Assembly (NCBI RefSeq): GCF_006345805.1
Contig: NC_043011.1
Span: 63,934,464-63,998,463, forward strand
Length of the DNA stretch: 64,000 bases
Reading direction: 5' to 3'
Origin: Octopus sinensis
Lineage: Eukaryota
Shown here: positions 3,931 through 47,027 of the stretch, piece after piece
Position numbering within the stretch: position 1 is the stretch's first letter
How the letters are laid out: every line of letters begins with the position of its first letter
Made by a program: the position numbers and the translations under genes
The notes under the pieces: generated by a model
The model's input: the letters and a program-made list of their open reading frames with translations, nothing else
Told to the model about the DNA's origin: nothing
Databases searched by the model: none

Positions 3931-3967
3931 CAACAATAAAGAAAGGAAAAAGTATTAAAAGTTTCAT
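3931..3967 (-). CDS. First coding exon (signal peptide) of secreted-protein gene A
   Basis: GCC-ATG context; reads MKLLILFPFFIV+G, 37 nt, then a GTAAGT donor. Paralogous to 43576-43612 and 46167-46203. Confidence 0.8.
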
Positions 3968-4110
3968 GGCGGATATTCATGTTCAAATCAACGACTGTTT
4001 TGTAACAACTTACTCCTGATTGTGTCATATATAATTTAAAGTTGTGTAACACATGTTTACACATACTGCGTTCACATATCAGGAATTAATTAAGATGGCT
4101 TGTTCAAGCA
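3968..4110 (-). promoter_or_regulatory. Conserved 5'UTR/promoter of gene A (TATA box 4028-4034, E-box 4050-4055)
   Basis: TGTCATATATAA and GTAACACATGTTT blocks recur with similar spacing upstream of the other two paralogous ATGs. Confidence 0.65.
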
Positions 4111-5447
4111 ATTTCCCACATAAAATTGATGTATGTTTCCGTTTCATATTTATATGTTTTTATAAATAGTCCATAGGAACCAAAATTCTCTCTCTCTCTC
4201 TCAACACACACACACACACACACATATGATATATATATATATATATATATATATATATATATATATATATATATATTTATATATATATATATATATATAT
4301 ATATATATATATATATATATATATATATATATATATATATATATATACATACACACATACACACACATATAGATATATACTTACATACGTATATACTGTT
4401 CATAGATGTGAATCAGATGTTCGCAGTATAGGATACACTTGCAGTGTTCAAGAGACACAAACGTGAGTAGGTATGGAAGTGTCTGTATAGACAAACGTTA
4501 GACAGATCAATTTATAATCTATGTTAAATACATGAAATGCAAAATATATATATATATATTCACTTACAAAATGTTTCACAAATATTATAGAGAAGTACTA
4601 ATTACCAACTACTTCTCCACTGCAGTAGATAGCAACCTTTTACCACTGCCCCCTCCCTATTCACTTCTCTCTATTCAGTTTCTTGCATCCCTGCATACCA
4701 TTGTCTTCCCCTTCCAAAACCAACCCCATACTTTTGTCCCACTAACCATTGCTATATCGACTACCTACCTATCACCACTCTATCTATCGTCCCATCTACA
4801 TATTCTCACAGTTGTCAACAAAACTCAGTAATTTCCTCATGCACTGAACCAGCCAAAATATTTCTCTCAAATAATGACCATTCACTTTCTCTATATCTCA
4901 ACCAATTATTATTTACCCCTCATAGAAACTAGCTCAATAAACCATCATCAACTCCCCTCTTCCACTTACATTCAAATCTACTACTACATCTCCCTACTGG
5001 GCTCCTTATTAACCACTTGCTCTTGGAATTTATTTCCCCCTCTTACTATTCTTTACCTGAATAATTCCCCATTCCCTCCTCTGATACACTTAACTCTCAC
5101 CAAAATTGTTCTATCTTTGAATTTCATTCTTTTAACACAGTGGTTGTCAACCGTTTTAGACTAATGTCACGCTGGCACGCTGGCCCAATTCTTGGCGCCA
5201 CTCCCTACCCCAGCATAAATATACACCTCTTCCTTCAGCAAATTCAAAACAACCGTATATCACAAATAAAACGTAAGTCTAATTAAGGTATTAATATATA
5301 TGTATATATATATATATGTGTGTGTGTGCGTGTGTGTGTGTATGTGTGTGTGTGTATATATGTGGTTGTGAGTGTATATATATATATATATATATATATA
5401 TATATATATATATATATATATATATATATATATATATATATATATAT

Positions 5448-6889
5448 GATATTCTCCATACGCCAACTTCAGGAGAAGTCCAGAGAGCAGAAAATGCCAT
5501 TATATATGGCCTTCATTGATCTGACAAAGGCCTTTGACTTGGTAAGTAGGAAAGTCCCCTTCATGCTGCTCCAAAGAATCGGATGTCCACCAAAGCTGCT
5601 GAGGATCATCACATCTTTCCATGATGATATGCAAGGCAGCATAGAGTACAATGGTTCAACCTCAGCAGCCTTCCAAATAAAACATGGATTAAAACAAGGT
5701 CGTGTCATTGCTCCTACATTATTTGGCATCTTCTGCTCGCTGCTGCTGTCACATGCCTTTGTGACATCAGATGATGGAGTGTTTCTGCACTGTGGAAATG
5801 ATGGGTAACTGTTCAATCACTCGCGTCCTCGTCCCAAGACCAACATCAGAAACGTCCTGATCAAGGAGATGCTATTTGCTGATGCTGCTGCTCTGGTATC
5901 ACACACAGAAGAAGCCCTCCAAAGGCTCATTAACTGTTTTGAGCAAGCATGTGGCAACTTTGGCTTATTTATCATCCTCAAGAAGACCAGCATCATGGGT
6001 CAGGCTACATCGACAATTCCAAACATACAAATTGGAGATCACAGACTACATGATGTGGAGAAGTTTACCTATCTGGGCTCTACCGTCACCTACAACCTAT
6101 CCCTTGATACTGAGCTCAATATACGCATTGGCAAAGTAGCTGCTGTGGTAGCCCAACTCTCCATACGGGCATGGGACAACAATAAGCTGGCCAAGACCAC
6201 AAAAATGAAGATTTACCAGGCATGTGTACTTAGCACTCAACTGTATGGAAGTGAGACTTGGACGCTATACATATGCCAAGAGCGTCGCCTAAATATATTT
6301 CACCTGCGCTGCCTCCGTAAAATCCTTCGCAACAAATGGCAGAATCATGTCCCCAACAAAGATGTCCTCAAGCAAGCAGGAATACCAAGCATGTTTGCAC
6401 TCCTCACACAAAGACGTATGAGATGGCTTGGGCATGTTAGCCGTATGAAAGCTGGCAGAATCCCCAAGGACATATACAACGGAGAGCTTGCTAGGGGCAC
6501 TAGGTCTGTGGGAAGACCGTTCTTACGATACAAGGATGTTTGCAAAAGGGACATGAATGCCTGCAACATCAATATTACCAACTGGGAAGCAGTTGCCAGC
6601 CACCCTAAGGATTGGCGACGTACCGTAATAGAGGGGACACAAAGGAGTGACAGAGAGGGAGAGGAGAAATGGAAAGACAAGAAAAGACGTCAACAAGAAA
6701 CTATGACATTACAACCAGCCAGAAACAGTCTTCGCTATATTTGCGACACCTGCCAGGGGGAGTGTTTGTCCGGGATAGGACTACACAGCTACAGCAGGAG
6801 ATTTATTAGGATATGAAATGTAAAAGCCGGACTAGATTATTTTCTGCACAACTCCATTGTCTCCCGAGACAAAAAGGATGCCAACAACA
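5448..6889 (+). mobile_element. RTE-clade LINE, 5'-truncated, RT plus C-terminal zinc knuckle
   Basis: ORFs 5320-5808 and 5869-6816 share a frame and are split by one TAA (5806-5808). Motifs: QLQEK..AFIDLTKAFDLV, GLKQG..APTLF, LFADA, FTYLGS, LYGSETW, RMRWLGHV, CDTC..C..H. RTE-type 3' end TCCATTGTCTCCCGAGAC..GGATGCCAACAAC. Confidence 0.92.
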
Positions 6890-7388
6890 TTATATACGGA
6901 TTTCTTAGACAGGGACTGAAACAAATCAATCGTATATATATGTATATATGTAAGTGTATATGTGTGTCTTTGTGTCTGTGTTTCGCCCTCATCACTGCTT
7001 CACATCTGCTGTTCATTTATTTACATCCACAAAACTTACTGGTTTCACAAGAACAAACTAATAGAATATGTACTAGGCTTATCAACATAAAAAAGCACTA
7101 GGTTGTGTCCCATATTTTTGTTTGCCCACTCAGTTGTATCTATCAATTTATCTTTGTGTGTGTTTATGTATGTGTGTGTGAGTATATCTATATCTATATC
7201 TATCTATATCTATCTTAATGTATATATCTATCTATATATATATCTATCTATCTATCAATCTATCTATCTATCTATCTATCTATCTATCTATCTATCTATC
7301 TATCTATCTATCTATCTATCTATCTATCTATCTATATATATCTATATATATATATATATATATATATATATATATATATATATATATA

Positions 7389-45467: not shown

Positions 45468-45556
45468 TCACTGGCGACGCACGTTCGGGCAATATCGCCA
45501 CCGGGACATATCATATCTATTGAAGCGGAAACAGCCGACAACCACATTGAAAACGT
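45468..45556 (-). CDS. Candidate exon 2 of gene B
   Basis: Strong acceptor TTCTGCTCTCTTCCAAATTCCAG. Phase 1 reads (D)VFNVVVGCFRFNRYDMSRWRYCPNVRRQ*. CpG-containing island with similarity to 56400-56565. Confidence 0.45.
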
Positions 45557-46166
45557 CTGGAATTTGGAAGAGAGCAGAAGTGAACATAATTTTGAGATCC
45601 TGTCATATATTGGAAGGGGACAATTTAGATAATTTAGAAAGCCCAGCACTAAATAGCAGCGGTCATACAATATCCCCTCCCACCCTGATTTCACGAGACG
45701 TAATCTCAACTTTCTTGGGTTTGTTTGTGTCTTTGTTTAAAAAAAAACATGTAGTTGATGACTAGGCTGGGGGAACTGATGCGAGCGAGAAAATTCCTCT
45801 AGCTCTACTAATGGCTTCAGCTGGTGAGATAGCCCCCATGATTAGCTTTGCAGATTATATAAACCCCCGGAGTTGTTGTTTACCTGCAACATGGATTGGA
45901 AGGAAGTTACATGTGGCCTGAGAAAAATATCAGGCAGTGCTCCTGTATGGCCGCACTCAAATGACTGAAACAAGTAAAAGAATACAAGAATGTATAAATA
46001 CATAAGTACGTATGTGTGGGTGTGTATGTAAGATCCTGAGATGGGATCCATGGACAGATGATAAAGAAAGGCTTAACATCTTAGATCTTAACATCTTAAA
46101 TAGGATATTATTTCTTCCACAGAGATGCAATGGTGAAACAAACAATATCAGTAAAAGCTTACTTAC

Positions 46167-46203
46167 CAACGATGAGGAACGATAGAATTACTAACAGCTT
46201 CAT
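46167..46203 (-). CDS. First coding exon (signal peptide) of secreted-protein gene B
   Basis: Reads MKLLVILSFLIV+G, 37 nt, then a GTAAGT donor. TATA at 46264-46270 and CACGTG at 46285-46290. About 200 bp of upstream similarity to gene A. Confidence 0.8.
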
Positions 46204-47027
46204 CGTCGATATTCACGTTCAAATCAATGATTGTTTAATTGCAAATTAAACACGATTCTGTCATATATAAACTAAAACTATGTAACACGTGTTTCTCCAT
46301 ACTGTTTTCAAAAGCCATCAACTAATTTAGATGGCAGGTTCAAACGATTTTCAGGAAGTGTATGAAGATTTAAAAAGGAAATTGATTTATGTTTCCGTGT
46401 CGTATTTGCAAAAGCAATATTTCAATATTTACATAGAGTGCACACCATCAACACATTTGTATCAAATTCATAATTAGTGTCTAAATATGTGTGTACGTAC
46501 ACGTTCATACGTTTGTAAATGTGTTATTTTGTCCTCGTAAATAGAAACTATTACGTTTTAAAACTCACATACATGAATAAATACGCACACACGTAAAATC
46601 ATAAATATCCTAAAGCGCACTGATGTATGCATGCATGTATGTATGTAGACAAACATGAATGTATATATGTAGATACAAACACACACATATATATATGTGT
46701 GTCTCTCTCTATATATATGTAAATATATATATATATATATACATATACACTCACAAAGGCATATATATATATATATATATATATATATATATATATATAT
46801 ATATATATATATATATATATATATATATATACAGTTCAAATCTAATAAAGACAGAGGACGATAACAGGTTAAAGAACACTGAATCTCCTCCTCTCTACCT
46901 CATCTCCCCCTCTTTCTCGGTCCATATCCCCTCTCTTTTTGCTCCATATTCCCCTCTTGCTCGCTCTCTCTCTCGCTCTCACGCTCTCTGTCTAATTATG
47001 TATATATATATATATACATAATACTAC

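Follow-up and report, generated by a model that had tools for sequence, protein, structure and literature searches.

In a 64,000-nucleotide (nt) stretch of the Octopus sinensis genome (RefSeq assembly GCF_006345805.1, contig NC_043011.1, positions 63,934,464 to 63,998,463; hereafter the window, in whose own numbering all positions are given), we compared three related minus-strand loci, designated A, B, and C. We lean, by a modest degree, toward interpreting A and B as a pair of paralogous genes, so far unannotated, whose products would be secreted and which share an exon with a Cys-x14-Cys motif, and C as a promoter and leader exon adjoining B. The evidence comprises (i) homology of the three copies, (ii) collinearity of A and B, (iii) retention of splice sites and reading frame, and (iv) the pattern of substitutions over codon positions. 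A first-pass annotation of this DNA had proposed that the loci are the 5' ends of genes for secreted products, and this proposal is supported by the coding-type first exon and by a second exon that A and B share, with conserved splice sites and frame.

Each locus, read on the minus strand, has exactly the structure that was first noticed, namely an ATG followed by 37 coding nt and then GTAAG. The coding part of exon 1 occupies positions 3931..3967 in A (ATG at 3967, MKLLILFPFFIV plus G, donor G/GTAAGT after 3931; the slash marks the splice site), 43576..43612 in B (ATG at 43612, MERFIIFFFFIF plus G, donor G/GTAAGA after 43576), and 46167..46203 in C (ATG at 46203, MKLLVILSFLIV plus G, donor G/GTAAGT after 46167). 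The 37 coding bases place the following intron in phase 1 in each copy. The encoded leaders, MK-LLILFPFFIV, MER-FIIFFFFIF, and MK-LLVILSFLIV, respectively, consist of an N-terminal Met, charged residue(s), and a hydrophobic core in which 8-9 of 9 residues are hydrophobic, and all three have the composition by which a secretory leader was recognized here (Met, 1-2 charged residues, and a core of at least 8-10 hydrophobic residues). When both strands (128 kb) were scanned for the open and hydrophobic pattern ATG-N34-GTAAG, A, B, and C were the only sites. In B, an additional in-frame ATG is present at 43621 (MGTMERF...).

The first exons are embedded in a homologous block (block 1) of about 400-420 nt, which reaches from about 200 nt before the ATG to about 170 nt into the intron. 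It spans 3760..4165 in A (from the upstream region through exon 1 to ~170 nt into intron 1), 43396..43816 in B, and 45990..46410 in C, all on the minus strand; the last of these is the sole block of C. Pairwise identity is 60-74%, with E-values of 1e-22 to 1e-53 in pairwise comparisons and 1e-105 to 1e-118 in nhmmer searches (5e-118 for A, 3e-109 for B). Judged from these alignments, the likeness of A, B, and C is true homology and not chance or a sharing of isolated motifs. An nhmmer profile search of the window revealed no fourth copy of block 1. A and B align collinearly in three blocks distributed over about 3 kb, 4165-3749/43816-43396, 3581-3329/42808-42524, and 1019-736/41305-41003. The middle one (block 2) is intronic, alignable and yet noncoding; it was considered as an extra exon and rejected on account of its indels (13, 9, 5, 22, 1, 3, and 5 nt), its stops, and the lack of shared splice sites. 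The predicted intron 1 of A (839..3930, minus strand, 3092 nt) holds microsatellites, a reverse-transcriptase fragment (1634-2029), and block 2 (3329-3581), and that of B (41109..43575, minus strand, 2467 nt) holds block 2 (42524-42808) and a repeat (41496-41718) resembling a short interspersed nuclear element (SINE).

The collinearity of A and B bears on a possible mobile-element origin, according to which block 1 would be a transposon end or a captured fragment, with a Helitron-type carrier or a mid-copy non-autonomous element spreading the promoter and exon 1. Such an origin would suit C, a free-standing block of ~420 nt with no further homology, as well as the microsatellites or repeats that border all three blocks and the dominance of sequence of long interspersed nuclear elements (LINEs), Penelope-like elements, and SINE-like elements in the window. 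We nevertheless consider it highly improbable. The A-B collinearity extends far past block 1, through the intron blocks and exon 2, as in a segmental duplication and not in the transposition of a short unit; block 1 has three copies in the 64 kb, to which the count is confined, versus at least eight copies of the window's SINE-like family; no Rfam family reaches threshold in the window and there is no tRNA-like match; self-comparison reported no terminal inverted repeats at the block ends; and the substitutions in exon 1 are of the coding type described below.

The exon shared by A and B lies in the last of the collinear blocks. Exon 2 spans 745..838 in A (minus strand, 94 nt, (G)GAGFYNCKYAANAGCDMPFALSKKPGSRFC, acceptor TTTTAG/GT, donor CAG/GTACGT) and 41012..41108 in B (minus strand, 97 nt, (G)VASILTIVSNLAKERCPVPFNISKRAGSYFC, acceptor TTCGTAG/GT, donor CAG/GTATAT). 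Both copies keep the acceptor TAG/GTG and the donor TGCAG/GTA, the frame between them is restored by a +2/+1 pair of indels, and the acceptor AG/GT after the G of exon 1 completes a glycine codon, GGT or GGT(G), in both. Identity of A and B in exon 2 is 67%, whereas in the preceding 240 nt it is 54%, with 24 gap columns. The aligned exon-2 peptides (GGAGFYNCKYAANAGCDMPFALSKKPGSRFC in A and GVASILTIVSNLAKERCPVPFNISKRAGSYFC in B; the strings named for the spliced predicted products are CPVPFNISKRAGSYFC and CDMPFALSKKPGSRFC) have the common core C-[DP]-[MV]-P-F-x-[LI]-S-K-[KR]-x-G-S-x-F-C-R, in which the codons of two cysteines are kept in both copies; A has one extra Cys. The junction 3931>838 that had been proposed for A proves to be right, its acceptor lying inside the homologous exon 2 with conserved splice sites and frame. 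For B, homology places the acceptor at 41108 and gives no support to the proposed junction 43576>43295; the acceptor 43295 was rejected, as it lies outside the homologous blocks, has a poor pyrimidine tract, and yields a product without similarity to A.

Exon 2 ends at the GT donor in both copies, and from this arises the possibility, doubtful in our estimate, that it is an internal exon of longer genes encoding larger secreted or membrane proteins, the remaining exons of which would be located beyond the window for A or beyond the LINE array at 33-40.6 kb for B. After the donors CAG/GTACGT and CAG/GTATAT, 7 of the next 9 bases are identical in A and B and the homology then collapses; read-through past exon 2 reaches a stop after 18 codons in A (61 amino acids, aa) and after 3 codons in B (47 aa), and a hydrophobic stretch of ~20 residues in B could be a membrane anchor. 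Longer genes are disfavored by AATAAA signals 228-294 nt downstream of both exon-2 ends, though this hexamer is common in AT-rich DNA, and by the LINE array, which intron 2 of B would have to contain in the same orientation. They are also disfavored by the lack of a further homologous block downstream of exon 2: positions 744-1 of A match nothing elsewhere but simple repeats and a hairpin repeat, a weak test, as only 745 nt lie beyond A exon 2 in the window. Three-frame translations downstream of exon 2 gave no candidate for exon 3. Because the donor that terminates exon 2 is conserved, and more exons could follow beyond the window, the description of the products as small is unproven.

Repeats are found beyond both second exons. 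Directly downstream of B exon 2 and in the same orientation, positions 33056-40604 form a tandem duplication of a LINE segment of ~3.9 kb (33056-36970 versus 36941-40604, 81-94% identical) with minus-strand RVT_1 and zf-RVT open reading frames (ORFs). The hairpin at 398-581, 160 nt downstream of A exon 2, is an inverted repeat of ~184 nt, ~74% complementary, which contains a tRNA-like GTTCAGATTCCC stretch and AATAAA and is probably a SINE or a miniature inverted-repeat transposable element.

Upstream of each first exon, a 16-nt motif bearing an E-box, AAACAYGTGTTACAYA (CAYGTG), is found; its matches without mismatch in the window are confined to A (AAACATGTGTTACACA, holding CATGTG, at 4043..4058), B (AAACATGTGTTACACA at 43693..43708), and C (AAACACGTGTTACATA, with CACGTG, at 46279..46294), all on the minus strand. 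The TATA-like motif TTATATWTGACA matches, again on the minus strand, at 4023..4034 in A (TTATATATGACA), 43673..43684 in B (TTATATTTGACA), and 46259..46270 in C (TTATATATGACA), and at one unrelated chance site, 31370-31359. The latter, with ATGGAACGG downstream, was tried as a fourth unit and rejected for its lack of homology to block 1. The distances from the ATG are ~66 nt for the TATA-like box and ~88 nt for the E-box in all three copies, and the TATA box with an E-box further out that had been reported is thus present at every locus. The best 16-nt islands of the upstream region are the TATA box, the E-box motif, and an upstream GAAACATAMATCAATTT, each with 14 of 16 positions invariant. The further claim that a conserved promoter is a sign of selection is not borne out: upstream identity (60-74%) matches that of the exon (62-73%) and the intron (70-72%), and the islands are within chance. 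On sequence comparison, the shared upstream DNA is homologous sequence, in which constraint is not demonstrated.

Evidence of selection comes instead from the substitutions within exon 1. Its variable columns are distributed 7/2/8 over codon positions 1/2/3 (Fisher p=0.010, hypergeometric p=0.009), and the second position is T almost throughout; therefore, every replacement is hydrophobic. The ratio of the proportions of nonsynonymous and synonymous differences (pN/pS) is 0.28 for A-C (p=0.007 versus random placement), 0.45 for B-C (p=0.04), and 0.57 for A-B (not significant). In a neutral star-tree simulation with substitution and indel rates matched to the flanks, 0.85% of runs kept the ATG, the open frame, equal length, and the GT in all three copies, and 0.36% did so when hydrophobicity was also required. 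Taken together, the selection tests favor real, or long-functional, coding exons, with C included. The first-pass annotation had proposed selection on the family; the coding-type pattern of exon 1 (7/2/8, pN/pS 0.28-0.57) speaks for this, whereas the overall identity, being equal to that of the flanks, does not.

Several observations weigh against functional genes for secreted products. The selection statistics are post hoc, the pattern having already been noticed, and are based on few sites. As a whole, exon 1 (pairwise identity 62-73%) is no better conserved than the intron (70-72%) or the core and far upstream DNA (70-74% and 60-69%, respectively), and it is T-rich; T-rich DNA gives hydrophobic translations by composition alone. 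The promoter islands are not conserved beyond chance, being equalled in 58% of column shuffles. Both A and B carry an out-of-frame ATG (GAACATGAAT) 13 nt before the main ATG (3980-3978 and 43625-43623, minus strand), where C has GTG; within the presumed 5' untranslated region (5'UTR), it would open a short overlapping upstream ORF. For exon 2, the uncorrected ratio of pN to pS is 0.62 over 16 codons and not significant, and the N-terminal half of the exon is not conserved as protein. No homologue of exon 2 or block 2 was found for C in the window by profile search and comparison with shuffled controls. Searches for relatives were negative as well: the spliced A and B products gave no candidates in word-indexed protein database searches; a profile of the exon-2 peptide, compared with 1.84 billion representatives, matched only translated tandem repeats; contigs of metagenomes and prokaryote genomes, scanned for motifs, yielded 0 matches; and the peptide strings had 0 matches in a literature string search. 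These last results can be calibrated by the LINE ORF of the window, for which the best match has only ~60% identity, with matches scattered over sea urchin, corals, fish, amphioxus, and whelk. The searched collections thus evidently lack both the source genome and close relatives of it, and therefore the negative homologue searches carry little weight.

Much of this would also be expected of dead duplicates, that is, remnants that an old segmental duplication left of a gene or former gene and that now drift neutrally, with frames of 12 codons surviving by luck and T-richness. The similar identity of exon 1, intron, and upstream DNA, the promoter islands within chance, the lack of homologues or annotated proteins in the searches, and the loss in C of everything downstream of block 1 all fit neutral drift, and the noncoding block 2, still alignable, demonstrates that ~30% divergence alone leaves homology visible. 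What speaks against it is the period-3 distribution of substitutions (p≈0.01), the pN/pS of 0.28-0.45 for the pairs that include C, the neutral survival of 0.9%, and, in exon 2, the conserved splice sites and the compensated frameshift. We regard dead duplicates as unlikely, and still lean toward A and B being diverged paralogous genes.

The position of C is different from that of A and B. Its block 1 runs directly into a SINE-like fragment (45932-45996) and then into unrelated sequence, and the proposed junction 46167>45556 is without support from homology. The acceptor 45556 was rejected: the resulting product has two Cys 13 residues apart, but its similarity to exon 2, in DNA or in protein, does not exceed that of shuffled controls, and we treat these two Cys, as far as the sequence allows a judgment, as a coincidence. 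The stretch 45300-45950, which lies just downstream of C block 1 and contains 45556, carries long ORFs, of 149 aa on the plus strand and of 104 aa on the minus strand; the plus-strand 149-aa ORF, the only one run, has no Pfam match, and the stretch may be a fragment of an unknown transposon. C has the strand and splice phase of B and precedes it by 2.6 kb, with B exon 2 ~5 kb downstream of C. The family of three genes proposed at first is thereby reduced: three homologous exon-1 units stand, with only two demonstrable paralogous genes and C as an extra first exon. This exon would be either an alternative first exon for B exon 2, with its own promoter, or the remnant of a gene copy that has been truncated. 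The more specific scheme, in which the locus encodes orphan, lineage-specific, secreted disulfide-loop peptides and the duplicated promoter and leader exons of C and B serve as alternative first exons feeding one peptide exon, is in our opinion quite improbable. If it were true, the C and B leaders, differently regulated, could yield one and the same mature peptide.

Under the interpretation of A and B as genes for secreted products, the following pathway can be proposed: (i) an old segmental duplication would have given rise to the diverged paralogous protein-coding genes; (ii) a TATA-type promoter would drive transcription with a short 5'UTR; (iii) exon 1, with its 37 coding bases, would provide the charged N-terminus and the hydrophobic core (n- and h-regions) of a signal peptide; (iv) a phase-1 intron of 3092 nt in A or 2467 nt in B would divide a glycine codon (G/GT); (v) exon 2 would complete the leader, with GGAG in A and the longer VASILTIVSNLA in B, and then encode a short peptide with the two conserved Cys 14 residues apart and an internal dibasic KK/KR; and (vi) after entry into the secretory pathway, the leader would be removed from the product, and a small looped peptide would be set free. 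In this pathway, transcription, splicing, secretion, the disulfide bond, and the role of exon 2 as the last coding exon are predictions from gene structure. The Cys loop of the exon-2 peptide would probably be closed by a disulfide bond, and from the internal KK/KR we infer possible dibasic processing.

If real, A and B represent a type of gene that is missed by annotation: the first coding exon has 37 nt, the second has fewer than 100 nt, the introns of several kb are filled with repeats, and there are no homologues. Lineage-specific secreted peptides are the usual source of new neuropeptides, antimicrobial peptides, and toxins, and paralogues within one genome would alone suffice for codon-position statistics to flag such genes.

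The surrounding sequence contains further repeats. The SINE-like family has at least eight copies with 67-86% identity, at 12456-12685, 41496-41718 (in B intron 1), 21388-21544, 25389-25542, 54728-54861, 27268-27396, 29248-29372, and 19065-19173; it gave no match in a literature string search and presumably resembles the abundant octopus SINEs. Transposon ORFs (GIY-YIG Penelope-like, endonuclease/exonuclease/phosphatase, and reverse-transcriptase fragments) were observed at 10415-11386 (+), 13420-14109 (+), 5320-6816 (+), 1634-2029 (-), and 52049-52387 (-), the fourth of which sits in A intron 1. Positions 7386-7880 and 8091-8584 form an inverted repeat of 495 nt with 98% identity, each arm of which holds an ORF of ~112-121 aa (containing KILARCKPYTNGSGRCGLCDMERWLIWK) without a Pfam match; its appearance suggests a structure related to transposons and of recent origin. 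A palindrome of 346 nt with a perfect centre, 92% self-complementary, is located at 14923-15268 and adjoins a (TA)n-rich array of 740 nt (15359-16097), and an unclassified dispersed repeat of 249 nt, 85% identical, is present in direct orientation at 19741-19989 and 60984-61231.

Comparison of the predicted genes with known systems revealed both common and distinct features. An allatostatin-C-like peptide, suggested by 'PFNIS', was provisionally set aside, that family having a C-x6-C ring. UGT1A and the clustered protocadherins have tandem alternative first exons with their own promoters, and these are large, variable exons encoding functional domains. C and B resemble this arrangement as promoter and first-exon units on the same strand, 2.6 kb apart and in the same phase, with a single exon 2 downstream; the exon of C, in contrast, encodes a leader of 12 residues, and its splicing to B exon 2 is purely hypothetical.

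The nearest small-peptide genes in architecture are clustered genes with two or three exons, encoding vertebrate beta-defensins, molluscan big defensins, myticalins of mussels, and conotoxins; they share with the predicted genes A and B the short precursor, the leader placed (nearly) on its own exon, long introns, and a dibasic site. These clustered defence and toxin genes also arise by duplication in place, their mature parts diverge fast, and pseudogenes or partial copies accompany such clusters, all of which resembles the arrangement of A, B, and C. However, no sequence similarity to any of these families was found for the A and B products. In conotoxins, the leader is much better conserved than the mature region, and a superfamily signal or Cys framework can be recognized, whereas the exon 1 leader described here has an identity of 62-73%, no different from that of its flanks, and the products have no protein matches. 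Defensins have a six-Cys framework in the mature exon, in contrast to the two conserved Cys (C-x14-C) of A and B. Myticalin clusters are rich in pseudogenes (PMC5577615). In myticalins, the whole leader, the linear cationic mature peptide, and the dibasic site are encoded by one exon (exon 2), followed by a phase-1 intron (PMC5577615), whereas in A and B the leader itself is split and the peptide would be a Cys loop.

A broader correspondence is also architectural. In genes of secretory proteins, phase-1 introns are overrepresented in GGN codons in the region where the signal peptide is cleaved (the Tordai & Patthy rule; PMC1626468), a rule that defines an architectural class and not a sequence family and has no bearing on function. 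The family described here is an orphan, its architecture is textbook, and nothing so far indicates an unusual mechanism: as in secretory genes that follow this rule, the predicted leaders of A, B, and C would be split in phase 1 within a G/GN codon ~13 residues in, and the first coding exon comprises the n- and h-regions only.

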